Part shown: one piece after another, positions 16,216 to 31,627 of the stretch
How positions within the stretch are numbered: the first letter of the stretch is position 1
Layout: every line of letters starts with the position of its first letter
Assembly: GCF_048593235.1 (NCBI RefSeq)
Contig: NC_133620.1
Location: 295,817,765 to 295,881,764 of the forward strand
Origin: Sminthopsis crassicaudata
Taxonomy: Eukaryota
DNA: 64,000 nt
Direction: 5' to 3'
Program-made: the position numbers and the translations under genes
Notes under the pieces: model-generated
Told to the model about the DNA's origin: nothing
Databases searched by the model: none
Seen by the model: the letters and a program-made list of their open reading frames with translations, nothing else

Positions 16216-19200
16216 TCACCAGAGCCGATGTTGGTGAAGGTTTCGGCTCAGCACAGAGCGGACGTCGGCAGTAAACCTGGGGTAGGGGAAGAAGGGAATA
16301 GTAGGGGATAAACATTCAACCACTTAACAAAGGATCCAGGATCCCTAGGTCTCCTTTTCCTCCAGCCCCTAATTTCCTCAAGAATATAACAACAACATTA
16401 ACAAAAGACATTTTATACAATGTTAAGATCTACAAAGCACTTTACATAAATTATCTCATTTGGTCATGACAGAACAATCCTGTGATGGAAGTAATACTAC
16501 AGATATTAATCCCATTTTATAGATGGAAGGTTAAGGGATAGTCACACAGCTAGAAGTGTCAGAAGTGGGCCTGAAAACCAGGTCTTCTTTACTCTAGGTC
16601 TAGCATTCATTCTACTACACCTCTCCAGTACCCAGACCCAAGTATCCAACCCTAACCTTCTCACCTGAGAGCATCCAGCATAGGGAGCAGGTTGAGGAGT
16701 GCTGTGTCACTGGGGTCACTAAACCAGGACTTGATTGGGATGGCATTGTCTGGAAGGTAAGGATTAAGAAAATAGAAATGAGCAAGTTTGAAAAAAGATA
16801 ACTATCAAGTTTTACCTGCCTTACAACAATCCTGTATTATGAAATGCAATGCATTATATCACCTTTATTTTACAAATGATAAAAAGGGCTCAGAAAGTTT
16901 AAGTAATTTACTCAAGGTTAGACAACTACATATTTCAGTTTTGGGTTTTTTTTTTTAATAGTATTGTAATTTTCCAAATACATGTAAAGATAGTTTTCAA
17001 CATATATTTTTGTAAAACTTTTTTGTTCTAAATTTTTCTCCTTCACTTCCCTCCCTCCCTGAGACAGCAAATAATCTGACATAGGTTAAGTGTGTGCAAT
17101 CCTTTTAATGTCCATATTTGTTATGGGCAACTAAATATTTGAACAAAGAGATAATATTCCAACTCAAGTGGTCCTTCAAAATACCTCTTTCTTGAACATC
17201 CTTTATTCCCCCTATACAAAAATTAGGTATATTTTATAGCTGTTTGATGTGAGCATAGAAAGCTACAGGACAATTATGATCTATTAAAATTTAATTGCAA
17301 CATTTGAAAATCAAACTTTGGGGGCAGCTAGTGGATAGAGCACCAGTCCTGAATTCAGAAGGACCCGAGTTCAAATTTGATCTCAGATGTTTAACACTTC
17401 CTAGCTGTGTGACCCTGGGCAAGTCACTTAACACCAATTGCCTTAGTAAAAAAAAGAATAATAAAAAATCAAGTTTTGTAAAAGAAATTTGGGAAAGAGA
17501 ATTTACCAAAAAACCTGTCACAATATTCTTTTAAAAGTGCCCCCCTTGATTGCATTTAGAACAATATGACTTAAAAATTTTAAGACTATATACTGTATTA
17601 AGCAAAAGCTATCAATAAATTAGGACTTCTGGTTGATCAAAGTTTAAAAACAAAAGCCTCTCTCCCAAAGTGCTTTTACATGATTTATTATTCAGACAGT
17701 GATCTGAAGTCTTAAAGAGTATGAAGAGATGAGTCTCCCCATTTTATAGAGGTCACACAGCCAAGTCAATCAGTGACTGAATAAAGCACCCCACACCCCA
17801 CCTCCCCTGGCCATTTTCTAGGCTTCCCTCAACCCTCCTACCTGGATGGCTCCTATATGCTCCTGGGGAGTTATCCAGGATCACAATGCTGGAAAGGTCA
17901 CTGTGGACTACAGAGAGGTCCTTGATGTAGCTGCCCAACTCCAAAGTGCAGTGCTGGGAGGTGGTGTAGACAAGGGCATTAGCTAAGAAGAGATAGACCC
18001 CCTTTGGGGCTGGTTCCTCAAATCCCAACCTGTCCAGATTTCTTATTGTTCTCACATTGAGAACCTGGCAAGGAATGGGGAGAGGGGAAGGGAAAGTGTA
18101 AGGGGGAAAAGGGAATGGAAGCCACCTCCCTAGCCCGTATACCTAGAGAAACGGGTTCTGTTATGTTATCTCCTAGCCTGATGATTTGCCCCATCTACCT
18201 GCTTATTCAAGACATTAACATCTGGGTTCCCAAGCCCAATTTTTCTTCAAAAACTAGAGAACTCAGGTCCCTCACCTGTCTGTAGTATCGTCTCTTAAGT
18301 ATGCTCCGGCTATTGTCCAATTTGTCAGCCACAGCTGAACCATAAAACTCCATGCTTGCTGTAAATACAACCAGCTCATACCATTGGCTCACCTGAAGGA
18401 GAAGGAAATGGAAAGCTATCACAGACTGAGAGACTCACATCTCTATGAACCAGATACCAAATTTATAATCCTGATTATATCTTTGGGTCAATATATACAA
18501 ATCCCAGATTCAAAAAGGGTAAGGACAGAAAGCTCAAAAATAAACAGAAGCCCATGGCAACAGCTAGAGTTGAATAAGACCACAATACCACCCTGCTAAT
18601 TCCCATCACTACTATATTGCTCTTCTTCCAAGTCTCCTAATACAACTAACATCTATATTCCCTCTCCCCCTCCCCCAATCTCAACACTGAATAATCCCAA
18701 TCCTTTATAGCCTCTATATTTAGATCCTGAAAATTCTTCTCTTAAACACCCATCCCCCCAATCCCCTACCCAAAACTTACCACTTCTAAGAAGAAGTCCA
18801 CATGGGGCCTCTTATGTACAAAAAAACGGACAGGATGTTTGTCTATTACGACCTGTGGGGGGGATAAGGAGGGGCTGGGGGGAAGCCCTACTATCATCCC
18901 CTCCCTGGAGAGACTTTTGCCCCACCAGGCTTATCCCAGTCCCAAGGTGCAGGGAATAGAAAACCCCAAAGGAGATGAAGAGTAATGGGGACACAGAAGA
19001 GGGCAAAGTAGTGGCATATACATCCATCCCATTCACCCTCAGACCTTGAGAATGAAGTCAGGAGGTGTTCCTGGTCGAACTGTAGGCCTCAGAACCCCAT
19101 CGTGGTGGGAGTGAATAAGAGTTTCATCCAAATCCAGCACTAATATCTTTCGCTTTACCTGGCCTAGAAGGGGAGGGGGGTGGAGGGTGGGGGAGGGAAA

Positions 19201-21914
19201 GATAAGACCTTTGTTCCAGGGCCTTTTAGCTTCTCCAAGATATTTACTAGTAGCTGATCTTTAGGCTCCATCCATCCTACTCTCACTTTTAGCCTTAGAT
19301 TGTTTCCCAAGGTCCAGGTACTCACCAAGCCGGTTTCGGGACACAGGGGATAGAGGAAGGATGTCATATCGAACAGTCTGATACTGAATTATCTAGAAGC
19401 AAGAAGGAAGTATTAGGACTTTTTACTAGAGGAAACTTTTTTCCAATAAAAGTCAGGCACCCACACACAAAGTTCTATCCTAGCCCTCACTATCCCAAAG
19501 ATATTTTATAGCAACTCTTAATATTGACATCAAAAAATGAAATGAACTCTAGATATTTGGGTCTCTGATTCCTGAATAGTGTCAATTGGAATGACTATTC
19601 TTCTGAGGAAAAGAACTGTAGACCGGGAGGCACTCCTGGGTCTCTGAAGGGGAATGGGGGTCTGGGGACTGAAGGGTCAATCTCACCTGGGCCTAGGCAT
19701 ATTCAGAGATTGTCAGGTCAGTTAAGTTCTCCAGGCTAAGGGCCATGGAGCCTATTTTAACTAGCCACCTGTCCACTTCCATCATCACTAGCAGTCCGGG
19801 ATTACACAGGACCTTGGCCCCCAAGGCAAGTTTCTCTAGGTGCTTAGTCTAATTAGTCAAAGGCCCAACTTTTTAGGCAGATTTGACTGGTTATCAGAAA
19901 GCCCAAAGCATTAATTTCTTTCTCCCTCCCCCTGGCTCAGAATAATTTTAATTCCTAGTCTTCATGTACCTAAAAAGATCAGTCCCCTCACTTTATACAT
20001 AAACTAAGACTGGAGGGATTAAATTATTTACCTCATGTAACTAACATAAAACTTGAATCTTGAGGTGGAATTTGAATTCACCTCTAGGAGCTTCTACTGG
20101 AGAAGCTTGGATATTCCACTCTACTTAAACCCAAAGTTCCTTTGGATTGACGTCCTCATTTACCGAACCCAAGATCTTACTACTTATAGGAACCTAGACT
20201 TCTTGGCACAAAGCTGTTTTCTAGAAATCCAAATGTCTTATCTCCCCACTTCCATAGAATCTCCCCATTCTGTTTTCTCCACCTTAGGACAGGGCCTGAT
20301 CTGGAAAACAGAAAACTGTGTATGCTATGTAAGGTAATGTATTTATGCATATGTAGGGAAAAGTTCCAAGCTGCAGCCAAGAGAAAGAGAATGGGGGCTA
20401 CCTGGAAATAGGACTTGAACGTCTAGCTTAGTTCTGGGATTTAGACCAAAAGAGATGATCATTTTGGAGGTCCCTAAACCCAGTACCAAAACCAGATTTT
20501 CTCCTCCTCTACCTAGGATAAAATGAAGCATTTGGAAAGAAGAGTCTGTAAGGCAAAGTCAAGCAGAAAGACAAATCTAGTGTGGTGTCAGTAGTGAAAG
20601 GAGTAATAGTTCACATTTATATAGCATCTGTCTGAAAATAACTTTCTTCACTATAGTATACTCCCTATTTTCAGAATGGAGAAACTGATTTGTTTGGGAG
20701 TAAAAAGCTATTAAATGTCAGAACTACGAATTCTCCCAGCCTCAAATTCTTCCTTATCTCTTTTCTTTCCCATAAACTAGCTCTCCCTAGGTTCAAGGGC
20801 TCAGGTTCTTACTTTCCTTTAGTGGTAGAAACCCTCTCAGTACTCTATGACAGAAAAAATAAGTTAAAAATGAAGCCCGTGGCCTCTTAACTGAAGGGGT
20901 CAATACTCCCTAAAATCCAGGAGATCTTTCTCTCATAGATGGGGCAGCAAACCTCTATTTGTTTTATTTGGAATTTCACTAAAAAGTTGTGGAGACAATT
21001 TATAAATTCTTTTACACCAGAAGCTTGTGTACTCCTAAATTCTCCCTTACAAAAAGATATCTGTCCTATGGAGAAAAAAAATTGGAGTAAAAAGCTAACA
21101 AACTCTATCAACACACACACACTCTCACTCTCTCCCCTTCCTTTCCTCCCTCCCTCTTCCCCTCTTGTGTTTCTCCCTCTGTCTCACAGTGGACATCCAA
21201 TTCAAAGTATCATTCAAATCAACAAAAATTTATAGATGAGGAAAATTACCACCCAGAAGACTCACCAAAATGTCATACTACACATGCCTCCATACCTCAA
21301 ACTTTTCCTAAAGGCTGAAGTCTCTGACAAGGACTCCTACTGTACGTTCTCTTTACCCTCCTATTTTTGCCTAGACACCAGGCTCTATCCCACAGGGTCT
21401 CCTTTAATTCTAACTCAACGGCTCCTCCCCTTTGCAAATGTGGCTCAATTCTTGTTACAAAAGGTTCATCAAAACAGTCCCTTCCACCAACCCAGATCAC
21501 TGGATAAAACTAGGTAAAAATTCTCCAAAAACAGTCCACCCCTTAAATTTCAGGGCCTTGTCAACAAGGTTCCCTATTAATACTCTTCCTTCAAAATCTC
21601 TGCCCTACTAAAGAAAAGTCTCAACCAGCTCAAGGGTGGAGGTTTCCCCCAGCAGGCCATCTTACAATATACATGCTTACCCAACTCCTGTCCTAGACCC
21701 AACGAAAATAGCCCACCAATTACTCCGGATAGCTTTTCTCGTTCCTCCCAAAATCCAGCAGGGGGGAGGGGGGGAAAGCGCTCCAGCCGGCTTCCTGACA
21801 CCCCAGTCTCACCGTTCGGACCTGTCTCCGCAGAAGGTACAAGCAGAAGCTCCAGAGCTTGGCAGCAAAGGCCACGAAGGTGCGCAGACCCAGGAGACAT
21901 TGAGTCCTCATCAT
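16216..21914 (-). CDS. CTDNEP1: CTD nuclear envelope phosphatase 1 (Dullard), 8 exons, 244 aa
   Basis: Exons 21813-21914 ([13 protein letters not shown]), 19326-19392, 19045-19163 (HAD motif DLDET), 18781-18852, 18276-18392, 17842-17953, 16665-16749, 16216-16276 (RNLHQHRLW*); total 735 nt, GT-AG. Confidence 0.98.
16420..16625 (-). mobile_element. MIR-family SINE (CTDNEP1 intron 7)
   Basis: aagcactttacata..ttatctcattt..cccattttatagatg..gtcacacagctag. Confidence 0.7.
16945..17135 (-). mobile_element. Marsupial L1 3'UTR fragment
   Basis: T-rich tail then ttttccaaatacatgtaaagatagttttcaacat.., reverse of the L1 3' ends seen at 35800-35920. Confidence 0.7.
17321..17464 (+). mobile_element. WSINE1-type tRNA-derived SINE with TSD
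   Basis: ggggcagcta..gtggatagagcaccag..gagttcaaat..gtgaccctgggcaagtcacttaac..A tail; imperfect TSD aaaatcaa(ac/gt)tttg. Confidence 0.9.
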
Positions 21915-23500
21915 CCCGACGCCCCTGGCCCTCACGGCCCGGGGGGCCCCGGGGCCCGGCTCAGCCAGGCCCCCAGGGGGCAGTGCCTCCCTTCCCCCTC
22001 CCGCAGTTGGGAGGGGAAAGGTATAGGGTTTGAGCACTAACAAGCTACAACTAGACCACGGTGGGTATGCAGCTCAAAGAAGTCTTCCCCAAAGGGGAGA
22101 AATGTCTCCAAGGAAGTAAGAGGAAAGATGTGGCAAGTCCTTAAGGACTCGCGGGAGGCGCACTCTGAAAGAAGGAGGGAAGATACGTGCTAAAAAGGGA
22201 GCAGATATTTTAGAGTAGGGTCCTTGGACCGAGGGAAGGGGGCAGATTGGGGGGGAGGGGGGAGGGAAGAGAGAAGCCCGCGGCGCAGGCGCACTAGGTG
22301 GTTGAGTGCAGGAAAGCCGGCGGGAGGAAGGGAAGGGCTGGGAGAGCGGGGCGCGCGAAGCTGGGAATGAGGAAAGAGAGAGTGCGGAAAGAGGGGAGGG
22401 GGAGCCACGAAATATGAGGCGCAAGCCTAAAGCTGGTCTCCCCCCCCCCACACTCGGGGGATGCCTTAACCGCTCGGAAGCAGGGCCGCTGCCTCTGCCG
22501 CCACATCCCCCAGCCTGACAGGCGCCATTTTACCGCCTAGAGTCCTCCCTCTCCCCCTTTCCTCCTCCTCTTCTGACATCACTTCCGGCGACCCACCCAC
22601 ATTCAGCAATGGTGGTAGAGGCTACATTCGGACTCATCGCCTCCCATCCGGTTATACTGCGCAAGCTCCAGAATGAAGCTACTAAATCACTCCCCGGAAA
22701 GGAACTGTCAGGTTGGATCTTGATGGAAGGGGATTGGTTTCTCTTCTACCTCCACCCCCGACTTCTGAGCCGGAAATCAGAGAAGCGCGCGGGACTAGAA
22801 GAGTGACGTATTCTCAGGCTGTGGCCTAGATCTTTGCTTTTTAGCATATAGTACTGCGATGCGCACGCGCCGCCCCTCCTCCCACCCTCTAACCTCAACT
22901 GCCCCCAACGGTTTTTCACGCCCTTCCGCGTGACCTACAGAGATGCACCCCTCCCCCTCTCAAAGAAAAGCAGCGTGGTCAAAAGTCAGGCAACTTCTCT
23001 GTCTACGTTTGCTTGTACTCCCAGTAATAAATTTCTTTCGTGGGCACCTAGGGGTAGGCTCGAAGATACTTCCAAGCATTTCCCCCCACCCTTGAATTTT
23101 AATTCTTGAGTCCCTCCCCACGCCAAATCCCATTTCAGATTTCTAGAAAAGAATCATAAAGATCAGGTCCCCAGTCTTGCCTGGGCACCGCCTGCGTTGC
23201 CGAAGCAGACCGGTAACGTCACAATGATGTTCAGAGGGGCCTTTGGAACCGAGGAAGGGAGAATTAGTCGGCCCATACACAAGATCCGAGTTCCCTGACG
23301 CCATCAACATGCGACTAGTCGCTGGAAGGAAGCCAAGTAATGGACAAAGATACTACAGTTGCTCCGGGGCAACGACGCCCTGGGCTTTCTCAGAGGTCAT
23401 GGTGCAGATGAAAGAGCAATAAGGAAGCGAGGTAGGAGGCGTGGCAAAGTGGGCCCCAAATACGGGACTTCGGGGGCTCTGCATGGGTTTCCAACGTTGA
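21780..23500. promoter_or_regulatory. Bidirectional CpG-island promoter CTDNEP1 / ELP5 locus
   Basis: CpG-rich; YY1-type GGCGCCATTTT near 22521, ETS ACTTCCGG near 22581, NRF1-like TGCGCACGCG near 22860, TGACGT half-CRE near 22804, TGACGCCATC near 23296. Confidence 0.75.
23350..23395 (+). pseudogene. ELP5: ELP5 pseudo-exon 1 (ATG>ATA)
   Basis: 46 nt, phase-1 GT donor at 23396; reads ILQLLRGNDALGFLR vs recalled MLDSLLALGGLVLLR (same length and phase, low identity). Confidence 0.6.
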
Positions 23501-23568
23501 TCTCGGTTTGAGGGGCACGGTTTAGAAACAGGCTTTGGTATTGGAGCGTTAGGAGAGCTCTCCTTTGG
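23496..23568 (+). pseudogene. ELP5: ELP5 pseudo-exon 2 (highly degraded)
   Basis: GAG GGG CAC GGT TTA (EGHGL vs EGRSL) at 23510; acceptor not recognisable; GT at 23569. Confidence 0.4.
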
Positions 23569-23754
23569 GTGTGTGGAGTTTGACTGGAGCAAAATACCTC
23601 CTGTCCCCGAATCTTCACCGTCTAGTTAGTAGATTTGCATGGGGGGGCCATCGCCTGCTTTGGAAGTAATCCTTAGGACTCTGAACACTCAAGCGCCTTG
23701 GGTCTCTTACCCCTCTACTTTAAGGAACTCTCTTGAAATCCCACCTTTTTGAAG

Positions 23755-23840
23755 AGGGAAGTAGATTCAATTTCTGGGCTGAGTAATGAATGGTAGGAAG
23801 AGGCACTCAAAGACTGTTTGGATTCGAATACCAACAGCCT
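23755..23840 (+). pseudogene. ELP5: ELP5 pseudo-exon 3
   Basis: ag|A GGG AAG TAG ATT CAA TTT CTG GGC TGA ... GAA GAG ... TTG GAT TCG AAT ACC AAC AGC = GK*IQFLG*..EE....LDSNTNS vs GEQVHILGC..EEE....FDSDINN; stops at 23762 and 23780, +2 frameshift. Confidence 0.75.
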
Positions 23841-24209
23841 GGGAGAGAAAAAGCAATACATAAGTTGTAGTGCCCCTCCCATTCATTGTGCCCCTCTAAC
23901 GTTCATTCATTGAAAGAGAATTTGGAAAATCAAATTCACATAAGTAGGAAGGCAGTAATAACAGGTAGAATCTATCTAACTGATAGAAACGAAATAGAAA
24001 TAAATGGGGGAGAAAAAAAGCTGTTCACCAAAGCCAAATTCTACCAAACTGTAGATCTGCACTTATTGAAACAAGTTCAAGCTTCCTATGGCCATCTCTT
24101 GACTCCTGCATAATTGGCTTCATTTTTTATGCACAGCTTCCTGGCGTGTACCCTCCATTTCATTCATTTTTAGTATTCTTTTCATTGCACAGTGTTCCCA
24201 TTCCTATAT

Positions 24210-24335
24210 GCTTTGGTTTCCCCAAATGTAAAATCGGGACAATAATAGCATTTCATAGGATTGTTGTGAAAATCACATGAGATTTGTAAAGTATTTAGCC
24301 AGGACCTGATATGTAGTAGAAGTTTACTAACTGCA
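24210..24335 (+). mobile_element. MIR fragment (ELP5 pseudogene intron 3)
   Basis: ttccccaaatgtaaaat..ataatagcatttcataggattgttgtgaaaatcacatgag. Confidence 0.7.
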
Positions 24336-25397
24336 CTTTCCTTTCTCTTACCCTTTCTTCTTATTTCTCTTCTTTTGATCATGCTGGAATTCCTGTTCAA
24401 ATCCCATCTTTGTATACGGCTGGTTTCATGAAGTTGCCTGCAGCGCAACTGATCTCTTTTTTCTTCTTATTGAATTAATACCACATAGAATTTTCATTAC
24501 TGTATTTATTCAAATTATGTTTAAGAAGCTTGTTTTTCTCAGTTTCTTTTTTGTATCTCCCATACCTCTCATGATTAATATCAATAGATACTCATTAAAT
24601 TTGATTTGGTTGATTGATTAACAAAAAATATGAAAGACTAAAGCACATAGGGGAGCTCTCTAATGGTTTTAGACATTAGATGTTTCAGACCCAGCTTAGA
24701 CTTGGGGAAAACTTTAGAATTGATTAAAATGTAGGCTGTAGGGGATGAGGTGGGGGATAGTCAAGGGCAAAAGTACCTTTTTGATCCTTAAAGGGGAAAT
24801 AAAAGAATAAAAGGGATAAACATAAGAATTAGACTACAAGGGAATATTTTAGATTATGACTTAGGATTGATTAATCAAACTGTGATGTATAAAATGAAAG
24901 AAAATGTTAGTTCATTATAAGAAATTATGAAAGATGCTGTCATTTAATCTTGGGTATTATCAACTAATAATGAGTGAGCATTACAAAGACAGCAGGATTA
25001 TAAAGAAAACTTTGAAATCCTTAAGAATTCTGATTAAAGCAGTGAACCACCATACCTAGAGAACGCACATTTTGCCCAGTTCCTGACAGAGGTGACAGAC
25101 ACAGGGTATAGATCTGTGTTTTTTGACATGGCCATTGTGTTGATAGTCATTTTGCTTATTTGTTGGCTTTTTAAGTTGGAGGGCAGTGGAAGTTAGCAAT
25201 AGTTGCAAAAGAGGGCAACTTTTAAAATACCCAGAAAAGTTCAGGGGGGAAAAAAGCACAGAATTTTGAAAGTAAAGTACAGAATTTAAATAATGTATAG
25301 AATTTGGGGTTTCTGTTGTGTTCTTTTATATTGATGCTCTTGAGTGTTTAAGTTCAGAATTTCAGAGTTTTTGTTCTTTTCTATTTTTCCTTTGTAA

Positions 25398-25599
25398 GCT
25401 TCTTTGCAATGTTTTCAGAGACCCATTTGTGGTGGGCAGGAAGTGAGACTTTGAAATTTTGAGAAAATATTTTTGAGTCGTGGAGTCTGACCTCTGTATC
25501 CTTGCTTTGGACTTGATTAGCCAGATGTTTCTTGCTCCCTAAAGTTTCTTTTCTCTTCCAGATTCTGTAGTGGGCCATTGGAACTTCATACTCATTTTG
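25398..25599 (+). pseudogene. ELP5: ELP5 pseudo-exon 4
   Basis: FRDP at 25414-25425, LR at 25459, ALDLISQMFL at 25504-25533 (vs ALDSLSWLLL) with conserved spacing; in-frame stops at 25444, 25474, 25540; donor appears as GCAAG at 25600. Confidence 0.85.
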
Positions 25600-25993
25600 G
25601 CAAGAAATCTGTTCATACTTCATCTCAGAACAGCCTGTCAGGAACAAGTTCCCTTTTTATGTTTTGTATCACTTCACCCATATAATTGCTATCATATTGC
25701 TTGCCTTCTCAGAGTATGGATAAGGAATAGGAAGGAGGAAGAAAATTTAAAACTCAATATTTTTAAAACATTAAATAAAAATTCAAATTTAATTGTTTAA
25801 TGAAATAAATAGAAATATGTTTGAAAAGGATCCCTCTTCCTGGCCTGCAACAGACCTTTCACATTCCTTTGTTGCTTCTTTTTTTCTTCTTAGCTTCTGG
25901 TCCATCCTGTTTTTCTGTGCTACCCTAACCTACTCTTAATAATGTCCTCAGTTCACTCATGTCCTGTTTGCCTTTTCCCCTGTCTTTCTCCAG

Positions 25994-26147
25994 AATATGC
26001 TAAGTTGTACATGCATGAGTCAGGTCTCTTGGGTGCCTTGAATATTCTGGCCTAGTTTGACATGGCAAGATAAAGGTGGGTTTTTGGATAACTTAACAAA
26101 AAGAGAATTGGAGGACAAGTCTGCAGAAGGAAGAGATAAAGCAGCTG
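25994..26147 (+). pseudogene. ELP5: ELP5 pseudo-exon 5
   Basis: HESGLLGALNILA*FDM (26014-26064) vs HGPGPVGALSSLAQTEV; CRRKR* (26122-26139) vs CRRPRQ. Confidence 0.8.
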
Positions 26148-26337
26148 GTATTTGGGAAATGGGAATAAAGCACAATCCATTGTTAGGATTAGGAATAAAG
26201 AATGAGGAAGAAGTGGTTAAAAATCATATAGTGAATTTGAGAAAGCATGGGGGCAGAGGTAGAACCGTTCAGGTAGCCATATTTTTGTTCTAAGTGCTTC
26301 CCTTCTAATCTTTTGCTTTCTGATATTTTTCATTTAG

Positions 26338-26430
26338 ACTCATTAATTCTCCATCCTGCCCAATTTCAGTATAGTCCTACTGAAGAAGCTTCTCACCCCC
26401 AGGAATATAGGATGTATCCAGTTTCTGCAA
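26338..26430 (+). pseudogene. ELP5: ELP5 pseudo-exon 6
   Basis: tttag|ACT CAT TAA TTC TCC ATC CTG CCC AAT TTC AGT = TH*FSILPNFS vs TQWFSILPDFS; W>stop at 26344. Confidence 0.88.
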
Positions 26431-26572
26431 GTTCATATAATTGATGGAGAGCTTTAAAAAGCATTGAGAGTGATTTAAGAGGTAAGAGGTGACATCCTAG
26501 GAGAGTTAAAAGAATTTGAGAGTGGGAAGATTAAAGGATGAGGCAAATTTTCATCATACTCTATTCCCATAG

Positions 26573-26673
26573 GTGTGGAATCCATGAGATTTGACTTTTA
26601 ATCTCTGCCTATCCCAGAAGAAAAGGAAAGACTGGGATATCCTGGCTCTGCCCTTCCAATTCAGTTTGGAAAA
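26573..26673 (+). pseudogene. ELP5: ELP5 pseudo-exon 7
   Basis: 101 nt with intact AG and GTAA sites; VWNP*DLTFNLCLSQKKRKDWDILALPFQFSLEK vs VDPTTHLTFNLHLSKKEREARDSLILPFQFSSEK; stop at 26585. Confidence 0.95.
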
Positions 26674-26754
26674 GTAATGTTCCTTAAGAATTGGAAGTGG
26701 GAAATGATACTGAAGATATTAGGAATAGATATCTGTGTCTCAAGTGGTAGAGTA

Positions 26755-26990
26755 ATAACTGCTAGCATTTAAAGTATAAGTTTTGCAGAATTTTTTACAT
26801 ATATTAGCTAATTTGATCTTTACAACAACTCTCTGAGGTAGGTGGTAATATGATCTCCATTTTACAGAAAAGCAAACAGGATGAGAGACTTATTCAGGAT
26901 CTCACCGCATGAAGTATCTGAGGCTGGCTTTGAACTCAGATCTTCCTGATTCCAAGTCCAGCACTCTTCATTGAAATCATCTAGTTCCCT
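26755..26990 (-). mobile_element. MIR SINE (ELP5 pseudogene intron 7)
   Basis: ctagcattta..tttacatatattagctaatttgatctttacaacaactctctgaggtagg..ccattttacag..gtatctgaggctggctttgaactcag. Confidence 0.8.
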
Positions 26991-27463
26991 AAAGTAAAAG
27001 TTACTGATTAACCTCTCAGCCTCTATAGAGACTAAAGTCCTTCCCTAGCTAAAGACATGTTTGGGGAGTGGCTCCTCAGGTGCCCAGGGATGGGTAAGCA
27101 AGAACTGAGGAAAAGGAAGTTGTAAGCCCCCACTCCCACCACCATAGAAGTTTTGGAACACTACTTGGGGGAAAAAGAAAAACACAATAACAACAAACAC
27201 TTAATACCATCTTTTTAGAAAGCTCCAAGTAGAGTGGTAATTGATGACTGACAGGTATTTATTAAATACTTGTTTCATTATGTGGCCACTAGGAGAAAAA
27301 AGTTTTACCAAAACCACCATTCCTCCATTCGTGTTGCAGAAATAAGACCATACCCATAACAATATTGCAAGTACCACCAGATGAAGGGACTCAAAGAATA
27401 GCCTGGAGCAGTAAAGCCTTGAATATCTCTTCATTCTAACACTATTATCTTTTTTCTCCGTAG

Positions 27464-27565
27464 GCAACTATCTTTGTCTCTTCCGCTGATCTTATATACA
27501 TATATTTTATGGGTCTTAATTCTGATGACTACCAGGAAGAATCAGTCAATGACCTGGATATCTGA
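27464..27565 (+). pseudogene. ELP5: ELP5 pseudo-exon 8 (terminal)
   Basis: Acceptor ttttctccgtag; HIFYGS* (27499-27519) vs HIFYEPD; after a frameshift DDYQEESVNDLDI* (27524-27565) vs DDLDQEDPDDDLDI*. Confidence 0.9.
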
Positions 27566-28757
27566 TGGTGCTGATGAATGACTGAATCCTGACTAACCTT
27601 GACTACGAACTGCAGCTATATAATATAGTCATACTTCCATCTTGTAAATTAGGTTCTAAAATCAGTGTATAAATCAAAGTGATTTAGTTAAAATTGCCCT
27701 TGAAATGACTTATAACATACATTATATAGTATCTTTAAGCAGTTATGGTTGGAAAGGGACTGGGGTCTCTGAAATTACTATAAAATAATTTAAAATAAAT
27801 TTTATTTTTCATTACATTCAACTTCACTATTAATCAAGAGTAACTGTTCTCAATTAGAAAAAAAGAAGAGATGTATTCTTAAGTAGCAGTAATAATGACG
27901 AGCAGAAAGCTTTATGCATAAGTGTTAACTCTATTTAAGGTAGGACTTTTCTTCATTCCTACCACAAATAAGTCCAAGGGAATTCTGACCTAGGAAACAT
28001 AACTAAAATACTAGGTTTAAGAGAAGGGATTGTGGTATAATGACTAGAGTCTCCCTCATTCCATCACTTGTACTCAGAGTGGAATGACAGATTTTCTTCA
28101 TACCAATTAGATTGTTTTTCCTCTCCTTTTTGGTCCAGTATGAACAAATGAATGAAGGTAAATTGTATATAATGAGACTTATGTTAGCATCTGCCTGATA
28201 TTGCATAGGATTTGTTAGGACTGGAAGATTTCCTTTCTGATACTTTTTTACTTTTATCTTTTCACTATCTACATCTTTTTTTTTTTTTTTTTTTTTTTTT
28301 TCTTCCTCAGCTATCACTGACCTTTTTCAGTAGGGCAACTCCTCCCTAGGAAGAAAAGTAGGATGGCTGCAAGTAGTGAGAAATTTCATATCCCTTCCCC
28401 CCCCCAAAAAAAAAAAAAGAAGAAAAAAAGCTTTTTTTTTTTTTTTTTTTTTTTTACAGAAAGCTAGAAAATGAGACTATACTAGAGAGAGCTAAACCTT
28501 TTAACCCTTGCAAAGAATGAGATACAAGAGCGCCATGGGTTGGGGAATGGTTTTGAAAATGAGTCCAAATTAATTCAGGAAAACTTAGGAAGAATCAATA
28601 TAAGAATTAAGCAAACAGGTGTAGAACTTGATTGGAATGGAAGCTGAATACCTTGGAGAAAGAACAGCAAAAGCTGAATGAACAGAGGTAAATGAGCAAG
28701 GGCAGGTATTAGCTGTCTAGCCCCAGTGGAATATAGGCAAGGTCCAAAACAAACTTC

Positions 28758-29002: not shown

Positions 29003-31627
29003 TCAGACATACTCCTTAGCTGAACTGGGCTTGGGATAGGACCGTGGGGGTCGGTACCCTGCTTTGCCTTCACTACCTGGGCATGAGCAAGAGAGGAGGG
29101 CCCCCCCCAACAAAACCAGGGCAGAGCCAGCCCAGCCAATAAAAATGGCAGAGCCAAATTCAAACCTGTGGAGAGATGCAGAAAGAAATATGATCAAAAG
29201 TACCCAGTTATCTGGCCTATAATCCCTGACTACTCCCATCATTTTCCCATGAATCCCTATTCCCATTTGTGACCCCAGGTACCCAGAAGGAGTCTAATAC
29301 TTACTTAGTATTCATAGGGACCAATGGATTATAAAAATCTGTTACAATCTGGTGTCCATACCAGGAACAAGCAATGAGGGCAGCAAGACCTAATCAGGAA
29401 AGGAATAATGGATTCAGAGGTCCTATGAATCCCTTGACCTACTACCTCACTTTAAGATCTTTAGAGGTTATAAGTTCCAAGTCTAGAGCAAAACTACTAG
29501 ACTGTTAGAAGGCTTAGGAAAGGGGAGATGGGGCTTTAGGAAGGGGAAACAAGAGTATGGGGAAGGAGATGAGAACTGCTCACCAGCCACAATGAAGACA
29601 ATACCGCCTGTTATAGCAATTCGAGCTTTCTTCACCTTGTCATCACCTCCACATCGTGTACACTTCATGCCCATGGCAGCTACCATCATGGCCAGAAAGC
29701 CCAAAACCAGGGAGACAACCATTAAGGCCCGGGTGGCCTGCATGGAAGCTAACAAAAGGAAGGCTTATTATCATTGACTTAGGTGAAGGGACCAGACCTC
29801 TGATTTTATTGATGAAGGAAATCCCTGGAGGTGAGGAAATTACATCTCCCAAGACTATACCACGCCTTTTTGGCAGCTTATTATTGGCGTACATTCTCCA
29901 TTGTATAACTTATACTGTATTCATGCCTTCTCAATATTGGGCCATAATTAATAGTTCACATTTTTTTAGTTTACATAGTGCTTACAATTTTCCTCAAAGT
30001 AGCTACCTAAGGTTCCTAGTATAAATTATTCAAAGCAAGATCCGTTATACTAGTAATTCTATTTCTTGGATTCGCTATTGGACCTTATTACACCCAAGTA
30101 AGGGGTTTTACTGAGTAGGACAAATTAGCTTAGGAGGCCAAAGCACCTATTTCCTCACAGAATCAAGGTATTCCAGTTTTCTCCATAGGGAACAGCCTTC
30201 TAAATTCCCCTCCCATTGATTTATGTACCTTTAGAATTATCTTTCAGCTACTCCACAGACCTCATCTCCCTAACGTCAATATCTGGATCCTCCCCATCCA
30301 ATTTTGTTCACGTATTCAATCCTGGAACCTCTTCCCTACAACTCTTTTCTTGGTCCCCAGCCAGTAGTAACCTGTTCCTTCCTCTCTGCCATTCCTGCCC
30401 CCTCCTCCCGCACCTGAGCCTTCCTGTTTAGTCCCAGCCCCGCCCGAGGAGCCCCGCCTCAGCTCCTGGACTACGCCCGGGGCGCCCAAGTTTCGGTGAA
30501 ACTGCTCTGGGGAGCAGAGCAAGCCCCTCCAAAGACCCCGAAGCCCAGCCTGGCCCGGACTCCGAGTATTGAGCCCCACCCTTTTGACCTCCCTCGGGCC
30601 CCACTATCTGTAACCTCGGGTGCTAGTTACTATAACTAATCGGTGAGATAAGATTAGAGGCCACAGGCAGCAGGCTCTGACTCTAAGACTCTGGCATTCG
30701 GGCCCTCAATATTCCCGTTGCTTTCTAGTTCGTCAATGTCCTTACTAGGCTGAGACATCAGGTTCCTGGGTTGTTCAGCTCCCACCCAGGCTCAGGTGCA
30801 AAGAAACAGAATCCCTTCAGGACCCAAACTTCCACACTTTAAGCCACCCTCATTCTTTTACTTTCTAGTCCCTCTCTTTTCAGTGGCCTCTAAGGCCGTC
30901 ACTTAGTGCAAGAGAAAAAGTAAAAATTAAAGGGACTAGAAGTAGGTGGATAAGGAACTAGAAGGACGTTGAACTTGAGTTTTATAGCAAATGGGACAGG
31001 ATGAAGACAGAGAAGGAGAGAAATCAGAAGTGAGAGCTCTGTAGAGAGTATTATACTTCTGCTTTGGTAAACTCGCATAACGTCCCTCCTTCAATATGAG
31101 ATCTTTCAACCCTTTCCTCCCAGGCCCATTCACCTCAGATGTCCCCAGTCCCCACCAGCCTCACCTTTCTTCCCTCCTCACCTCGGCCATTTGCCTGCAC
31201 ATTCATCCCAGTTTCCTTCCCACTCCTCCCTCAACCAGACACTTCAGTTGAGTCTTTAGTCTCTAAACTTGTAAACTTCTCCCACAGTGGCTTTCTACCC
31301 GGGAGTTTAGATTAGATCACCTCCACCGTCACCCCCAGCTCCTTCATTTCCCACCCTTTCCTCCCACCATCAGGACCCAAGTGACCAGTGCTCCCCAGCC
31401 TCACCAGGTAGAGCGAGGACTGAGTCGTACATCTTGCAGCTGATGAGGCCCGTACTCTGGCTGATGCATTCCATCCATAGCCCCTTGTACACCGCCTGGG
31501 CAGTAATGATGTTGTCCCCTGCATAAGAGCTGATCTGCCACTGAGGGATCGCGGTGCAGGCTATCAATCCCACCCACCCCAGAGCTGCCATGGTGAACCC
31601 CAGCAGCTGAAGACCTGAGTTTGCCAT
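29003..31627 (-). CDS. CLDN7: Claudin-7, 4 exons, 211 aa
   Basis: Exons 31405-31627 ([18 protein letters not shown] claudin signature), 29584-29748, 29305-29389, 29003-29165 (ends [13 protein letters not shown]-binding YV); total 636 nt. Confidence 0.98.

Follow-up and report, generated by a model that had tools for sequence, protein, structure and literature searches.

A decayed ELP5 gene between CTDNEP1 and CLDN7 in a marsupial genome and its probable replacement by an intronless retrocopy

The replacement of a parental gene by its own retrocopy is a known concept, and such orphan retrogenes have been described with RNF113A, MARS2 and TRMT12 among the examples (Ciomborowska et al. 2013, PMC3548309; Carelli et al. 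2016, PMC4772013). ELP5 is not mentioned in the searchable text of these two papers, and our literature search found the concept without any mention of ELP5. Compared with the cases in that text, the ELP5 retrocopy of marsupials is similar in being intronless and under purifying selection, with a CpG-island promoter region and a housekeeping function, and its intron-bearing parent became a pseudogene in the same lineage. Unlike those cases it is confined to marsupials and involves a core subunit of Elongator; the relic of the parent can still be read exon by exon and is still transcribed and spliced, and the retrocopy appears to include 240 nt or more of sequence from the parental upstream region. 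A second related class is the unitary pseudogene, in which a gene is lost and no functional copy is left. The locus described here resembles this class as a disabled gene at the orthologous site with intact neighbours, but differs in that an intact and presumably functional daughter copy exists within the clade, so that the function would not be lost; intact ELP5 is found in 11 marsupial species.

In eutherians and monotremes ELP5 (DERP6/C17orf81; Pfam PF10483, Elong_Iki1) is arranged head-to-head with CTDNEP1 and tail-to-tail with CLDN7. The window, that is, the whole stretch of 64,000 nucleotides analyzed here, shows the same order and strands as meerkat and echidna, where a multi-exon ELP5 lies between the two neighbours. 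From 23350 to 27565 on the plus strand it carries eight ELP5 remnants in the correct order, flanked by CTDNEP1 and CLDN7 (both on the minus strand), and the copy occupies the CTDNEP1-CLDN7 interval in the ancestral orientation. The eight-exon layout is common to the window and the meerkat gene model. The neighbours had been described as intact, and indeed the four CLDN7 exons (4/4) and CTDNEP1 exon 1 are open, the other CTDNEP1 exons being seen solely as open frames in the list of open reading frames. The relic adjoins the CpG-island promoter of CTDNEP1. Its recognizable parts are the following.

23109..23349, plus strand: parental 5′ leader and proximal promoter; matches DNA upstream of the marsupial ELP5 retrogene (MAFFT alignment)
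23350..23395, plus strand: exon 1 remnant; 46 nt ungapped against the retrogene coding sequence, 65-71% identity; ILQLL versus MLQLL
23350-52, plus strand: start codon of exon 1, ATG changed to ATA
23396, plus strand: old donor GT of exon 1; the RNA donor lies 36 nt further downstream and the RNA exon ends at 23431
23628..23676, plus strand: exon 2 remnant, weak, placed by global alignment; core 23640-23659 (WEGRSLL, 16/20 nt)
23755..23840, plus strand: exon 3 remnant; z about 5, 0/200 shuffles; also placed by DNA alignments
25399..25593, plus strand: exon 4 remnant; z 5.0 versus Monodelphis, 0/200 shuffles; 57% identity over about 180 nt
25993..26144, plus strand: exon 5 remnant; alignable core solely 26009-26060, E 0.002 versus Antechinus, 69-73% identity over 52 nt
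26338..26481, plus strand: exon 6 remnant, ancestral part 26338 to about 26414; z 5.8, blastn E 2e-5
26573..26673, plus strand: exon 7, better preserved than any other remnant; 77% identity by blastn (E 2e-17), z 17
27464..27565, plus strand: exon 8 remnant; blastn E 6e-11, z 2.3; old acceptor used by the RNA
27566..27840, plus strand: parental 3′UTR; matches the DNA that follows the retrogene stop codon (blastn E 3e-9, 5e-6); includes an AATAAA region near 27795

Unlike the eutherian and monotreme genes, the window copy has lost its start codon, contains at least eight in-frame stops as well as frameshifts, and has lost splice donors. At least nine disabling lesions are spread over the eight remnants. 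Exon 2 is 12 nt short. In exon 3 we find CAG changed to TAG at 23762, TGC changed to TGA at 23780 and a frameshift of +7/-2 nt. Exon 4 retains its acceptor AG at 25397-98, has in-frame stops at 25444, 25474 and 25540 and is about 10 nt short; no donor was found in the approximate alignment to the retrogene coding sequence, and in this approximate alignment GT is likewise absent where the donors of exons 2 and 3 would fall. In exon 5 CAG is changed to TAG at 26053. Exon 6 has TAA instead of TGG at 26344, its old acceptor is still in use, and a new donor at 26482 lengthens the RNA exon to 26481. Exon 7 has an in-frame TGA at 26585, with acceptor AG and donor GTAATG both present. Exon 8 has a net loss of 10-13 nt, resulting in a frameshift, and a TAA at 27517 in the old (HIFY) frame; the original stop TGA is retained at 27563-65.

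The preliminary description had claimed that ELP5 is a pseudogene at its ancestral site, and the ordered remnants, the lesions and the synteny bear this out. The peptides which it quoted as best matches are all present where it placed them, and the mutated start codon, the frameshifts in exons 3 and 8 and the damaged splice sites of exons 2-4 (the donors by approximate alignment) were read correctly. The stop codons it listed are the ones given above, with the exception of 26137, which falls in the unalignable part of exon 5.

The choice of the reference matters for the statistical support. Meerkat ELP5, rebuilt from its genomic locus, served as first reference and proved too distant to be sufficient, giving significance for exon 7 only (tblastn 26591-26704, E 3e-5; z 14.6). 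Marsupial ELP5 as second reference gave the z values listed above, and no shuffle reached the score (0/200 each) for exons 3, 4, 6 and 7. Exons 1, 2 and 5 are each alone not significant at the protein level against marsupial ELP5; their placement is collinear. At the DNA level the Dromiciops retrogene coding sequence forms a chain with the window through exon 6 (E 2e-5), exon 7 (E 2e-17), exon 8 (E 6e-11) and the 3′UTR (E 3e-9). A Pfam search with ten open pieces of the window returned a single match, at 26588-26674 in exon 7, to positions 255-275 of Elong_Iki1 (E 0.002); its 18 bits lie below the cut-off of 22.5, and the window copy has no intact open reading frame of about 290-300 aa. Neither the exon 7 piece nor Antechinus ELP5 matched an ELP5 chain in a PDB sequence search.

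Where then is the working gene? A query with cetacean ELP5 gave at least 120 eutherians among the matches listed, and the marsupials surfaced via the bilby protein (phmmer representatives). Eleven marsupial species, drawn from five orders, have an intact annotated ELP5 of 274-289 aa: Macrotis, Notamacropus, Vombatus, Petaurus, Trichosurus, Monodelphis, Gracilinanus, Dromiciops and the three dasyurid genera Antechinus, Sarcophilus and Sminthopsis. In 10/10 species queried, gene span and coding sequence are of the same length, so the gene has no introns, and no other gene is called within 10 kb. The gene sits in an AT-rich gene desert with flanks of 36% GC. In bilby, three dasyurids and Dromiciops, the five species for which DNA was compared, these flanks align collinearly on either side of the gene. 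The retrocopies are orthologous across Australidelphia. For the didelphids Monodelphis and Gracilinanus, and so across all marsupials, the synteny of the insertion is suggested by gene span and protein similarity only. The proteins score 47-59 bits with Elong_Iki1 (cut-off 22.5). Pairwise dN/dS (Nei-Gojobori) is 0.11-0.33, and 0.11-0.14 within dasyurids; judged by these ratios the retrogene is under purifying selection. A CpG island (GC 0.6-0.85, CpG o/e 0.7-1.1) covers the coding sequence together with the region upstream of it.

We therefore suggest that the relic in the window is very probably the decayed parental ELP5, replaced by a retrocopy which arose on the marsupial stem, that is, an orphan retrogene. 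The following steps can be envisaged. A processed ELP5 mRNA holding at least 240 nt of leader, the eight fused exons and the 3′UTR would have been reverse-transcribed in the marsupial stem and the cDNA inserted into another chromosome segment, at an AT-rich site with few genes. The intronless copy would then have served marsupials as their working ELP5, leaving the parent with its introns redundant and free to decay. Beside the CpG-island promoter of CTDNEP1 the relic itself is today transcribed as a spliced non-coding RNA of three exons. The insertion appears to be a single one that preceded the didelphid split. As the intronless copy elsewhere would have taken over long ago, the locus would be an ordinary instance of parental replacement by a retrogene. 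It also gives a clean case, open to dating, in which an essential gene gave way to its own retrocopy.

The relic is still transcribed. RNA contigs from the runs X1, X2, X3 and X11, which come from two organisms (A and B), span the whole interval, extend to at least 27900, past the 3′UTR, and show 0 differences to the window at the lesion sites. The parent is thus disabled in the window itself and, according to the RNA contigs, in organism B. The RNA is spliced and consists of exon 1, exon 6 and exon 8, with the joints 23431>26338 and 26481>27464 seen in contigs of X1, X2 and X3. Exon 7 is missing from the assembled spliced RNA and its read depth is at intron level.

It could be argued that the relic is retained for a function of its own, either with the RNA acting as lncRNA or encoding a micro-ORF, or with a role in the activity of the CTDNEP1 promoter. 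Three old splice sites are still active, exon depth is 5-15 times intron level in X2, and the same spliced form occurs in organisms A and B. The spliced RNA, however, has no open reading frame of more than 37 aa, and its exons have decayed to about 72% identity, which by our rough estimate is near the expectation for neutral drift. Moreover, divergent transcription from CpG-island promoters requires no function. We consider a function of the relic unlikely.

The extent of the homology between relic and retrogene bears on how the copy was made. It takes in the fused exons and about 270 nt of 3′UTR, and ahead of the start codon it reaches back by at least 240 nt. On the 3′ side it fades about 270-300 nt past the stop codon. 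On the 5′ side a gap-tolerant local alignment with the 300 nt upstream of five retrogenes gave z 6-11 (0/300 dinucleotide shuffles); local alignment with strict gaps was not above shuffles. Homology past 23100, possibly to about 22850, is significant for Dromiciops only, and beyond 22800 nothing is significant. The desert flanks of the retrogene are unrelated to the window. A duplication or translocation at the DNA level followed by intron loss would fit the upstream homology, as at least 240 nt and perhaps 500 nt are long for a 5′UTR, and would fit the retrogene flanks, where we detected no clear poly(A) tail and no target-site duplication, only degenerate A-rich stretches downstream. Over more than 80 million years such marks can be expected to erode. 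Against such a duplication, all seven parental introns are missing together in every species with the exon junctions fused, the homology stays within mRNA-like limits (UTRs included), and the new site is an unrelated AT-rich desert. A DNA-level origin is in our view very unlikely. As to the age of the retroposition which we prefer, the relic is equally distant from the dasyurid and the Dromiciops retrocopies (71-73% identity), and in a tree it groups with the marsupials and not with eutherians or monotremes (88/87); the same tree leaves it in a polytomy with a branch length of 1.87 rather than as sister to all retrocopies.

The preliminary description had offered two readings, a move of ELP5 elsewhere as a retrogene or duplicate, or an Elongator that runs without it. 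The intact and intronless copies under purifying selection support the first and, by the yardstick which the preliminary description set itself, speak against the second. A true loss, leaving a lineage without working ELP5 and with a five-subunit Elongator or an altered modification of tRNA U34, accords with the dead ancestral locus and yet is hardly credible given that eleven marsupials, three dasyurid genera among them, have these copies. The species of the window is bracketed by those carriers and shares 99% identity with Sarcophilus (Tasmanian devil) in CLDN7 exon 1. Presumably it carries an intact ELP5 retrogene as well, and this retrogene would be expressed and work in the ELP456 ring. 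Marsupials have almost certainly retained the six-subunit Elongator, and the false alarm of an Elongator without ELP5 is removed. For annotation pipelines this is a warning that, where a syntenic ortholog is missing beside intact neighbours, intronless copies should be sought throughout the genome before a loss is declared. The artefact which the preliminary description had also raised, ELP5 being intact in the animal and the lesions being errors of assembly or sequencing, has nothing for it beyond the general possibility and is negligible, because the RNA contigs of four independent runs and two organisms carry the same lesions and the neighbours are open.

How a retrocopy could replace an essential housekeeping gene is a further question. 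The daughter copy may have taken promoter sequence along. We propose tentatively, as a possibility that we rate below even, that the copied transcript started upstream of the usual start and so carried the parental proximal promoter with it. In the MAFFT alignment the 5′ regions share the blocks TAACGTCA (23214-23221), GGCCTTTGGAACC (23238-23250) and TGACGCCATCA (23296-23306). The CRE-like TGACGTCA/TAACGTCA block and the 11-nt TGACGCCATCA block are found in the parental CTDNEP1-ELP5 promoter and in the CpG island of the retrogene across Australidelphia.

In the window the ELP5 interval (23350-27565, + strand) is flanked by CTDNEP1 and CLDN7, and contains no long open reading frame. Multi-exon ELP5 lies between CTDNEP1 and CLDN7 in both echidna and meerkat, so the ancestral state here is a gene with introns. 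The meerkat locus, reached via a short CLDN7 match, carries CLDN7, a 297-aa Elong_Iki1 gene over 5.6 kb and CTDNEP1 together. We rebuilt its eight-exon ELP5 by enumerating the GT-AG chains which give exactly 297 aa. The window belongs to a dasyurid-like marsupial: its CLDN7 exon 1 shares 99% identity with Sarcophilus harrisii, against 92% with Monodelphis and 89% with Vombatus.

With meerkat ELP5 as reference, exon 7 alone exceeds chance in the window. With marsupial ELP5, exons 3, 4, 6 and 7 reach z values of 5, 5, 5.8 and 17, each above 200 of 200 shuffles, and exon 8 reaches 2.3; exons 1, 2 and 5 are individually weak, yet lie in the correct order. At the DNA level, the intronless coding sequence of Dromiciops forms a collinear chain.

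Neighbouring genes in the window and ELP5 remnants in the Dromiciops CDS chain (E-values where given)
About 17753-22043, - strand: CTDNEP1, exon 1 open against echidna
23350-23395, + strand: exon 1, CDS 1-46
23760-23839, + strand: exon 3, CDS about 111-188
25409-25578, + strand: exon 4, CDS 203-378
26009-26060, + strand: exon 5, CDS 428-479
26338-26402, + strand: exon 6, CDS 559-633, E 2e-5
26575-26674, + strand: exon 7, CDS 655-756, E 2e-17
27499-27565, + strand: exon 8, CDS 799-870, E 6e-11
29003-31627, - strand: CLDN7, all four exons open against echidna

The lesions named in the preliminary description lie in the ancestral frame: the start codon is changed from ATG to ATA, exon 3 carries CAG>TAG (23762) and TGC>TGA (23780) followed by +7/-2 nt, exon 4 has three in-frame stops, CAG>TAG (26053), TGG>TAA (26344) and TGA (26585) follow, and the frameshifted exon 8 is short by net 10-13 nt. 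The stop at 26137 falls within a stretch that would not align to ELP5. Exons 2, 3 and 4 have no GT at the donor sites that the alignment approximately places. RNA-derived contigs from four runs of two organisms, A and B, span the relic interval from end to end at 95% identity or more and show no differences from the window at the lesion sites. The lesions are therefore real and common to two organisms and, together with the ordered remnants, they bear out the earlier proposal of an ELP5 pseudogene at the ancestral locus.

Within the exon 6 remnant (26372/26373), contigs of run X11 (organism A) and loose ends of run X2 (organism B) carry 10 extra nucleotides, AGGAATAACC, that are absent from the window; this looks like an indel polymorphism or a species difference.

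Meerkat exon 4 (73 aa), used as a phmmer query against 1.84 billion representatives, retrieved ELP5 proteins, among them P0072, a Macrotis lagotis (bilby) protein with the name ELP5. With P0072 as query, ELP5 of Notamacropus, Vombatus, Trichosurus, Antechinus, Monodelphis and Dromiciops were among the matches listed; those of Sarcophilus, Sminthopsis, Gracilinanus and Petaurus were found as cluster members. NCBI annotation already labels the marsupial genes ELP5. In ten marsupial species the called gene span equals the CDS exactly (825-870 nt, 274-289 aa), all seven introns being absent, and where locus DNA was examined the protein can be read from it without interruption. The 10 kb to each side contain no further gene call. 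The GC content of the retro-CDS is 61-81% compared with 36-38% in the flanks, and a CpG island comprises the CDS and 250-500 nt upstream. The flanks are collinear on both sides in bilby, Antechinus, Sarcophilus, Sminthopsis and Dromiciops, so this is a single orthologous insertion, no younger than Australidelphia. Didelphid gene records have this intronless span and length too; the flank comparison concerns the five non-didelphid species.

The preliminary description had left two readings, relocation of ELP5 or an Elongator running without it. The latter is unsupported: intronless ELP5 is annotated across marsupials, all proteins tested pass the Pfam Elong_Iki1 cut-off, and pairwise comparisons give dN/dS values of 0.11-0.14 among dasyurids and 0.19-0.33 between orders. 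The evidence shows that ELP5 was relocated as a retrogene. We infer an intact retrogene in the window's own species, bracketed by three dasyurid genera; presumably it is expressed and assembles into ELP456.

The bilby copy (L002:10001-10825) has 81% GC, is 15 aa shorter, and has an altered N-terminus, a long branch (0.68) and dN/dS of about 0.3; it looks like one ortholog under strong GC-biased evolution. The Tasmanian devil protein (L004/L005:10001-10855) has 284 aa, five residues below Antechinus and Sminthopsis, owing to an in-frame deletion near the old exon 4/5 junction, identical in two assemblies. In Petaurus breviceps an identical 'ELP5-like' protein (P0249) stands under two RefSeq accessions on two contigs; either duplication of the retrogene or a haplotig could explain this.

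Homology between retrogene and window takes in some 270 nt of 3'UTR beyond the stop codon, the AATAAA region among them, and reaches at least 240 nt upstream of the start codon (z 6-11, 0 of 300 dinucleotide shuffles). Still farther upstream Dromiciops alone is significant, and past 22800 nothing is. Neither a poly(A) tail nor a target-site duplication was convincingly seen at the retrogene loci inspected. An exact 11-nt block, TGACGCCATCA (window 23296-23306), and a CRE-like block, TGACGTCA (TAACGTCA in the window, 23214-23221), occur both in the parental promoter region and in the retrogene upstream CpG island (upstream of 10001, the start of the called gene, in loci L003, L004, L006 and L007). 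Both blocks fall within the homologous stretch upstream of the start codon and are candidate shared regulatory elements.

The relic has marsupial-type residues (MLQLL start, DSNTN, LALPF, DDY). The protein tree groups it with the marsupials (88/87), on a branch 1.87 changes per site long; a marsupial reference guided its projection and introduces a slight bias. Dasyurid and Dromiciops retrocopies are equally close to it, at 71-73% identity over 460-610 nt and a JC K of about 0.35. This fits a parent-daughter split predating the dasyurid and Dromiciops orders and argues against recent gene conversion; the distance suggests near-neutral drift for something like 100 million years, a figure meant as an order of magnitude only.

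ELP5 follows the pattern of orphan retrogenes, in which the parent is replaced by its retrocopy, often with a CpG-island promoter (PMC3548309, PMC4772013). We found no literature pairing ELP5 with a retrogene, or relevantly with marsupials; for PMC4772013 this covers the searchable text.

The relic is still transcribed. Contigs of runs X1, X2 and X3 contain the GT..AG joints 23431>26338 and 26481>27464, with exon depth several-fold over the intervening sequence. The relic RNA therefore consists of an extended exon 1, exon 6 (old acceptor, new donor) and exon 8 (old acceptor). Exons 2-5 and 7 are skipped in this assembled form, although contigs show presence and not absence, and minor isoforms are possible; exon 7 still has an AG acceptor and a GTAATG donor. 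The longest ORF of the spliced RNA is at most 37 aa. The X2 contig with exon 1 continues for 1447 nt beyond 23000 in the upstream direction and enters the CpG island between CTDNEP1 and ELP5, so the transcript may start far upstream. Within old intron 7 (26772-27099), RNA word depth rises to 200-1240 and many contigs continue into unrelated sequence, which points to an interspersed, SINE-like repeat present in many transcripts.
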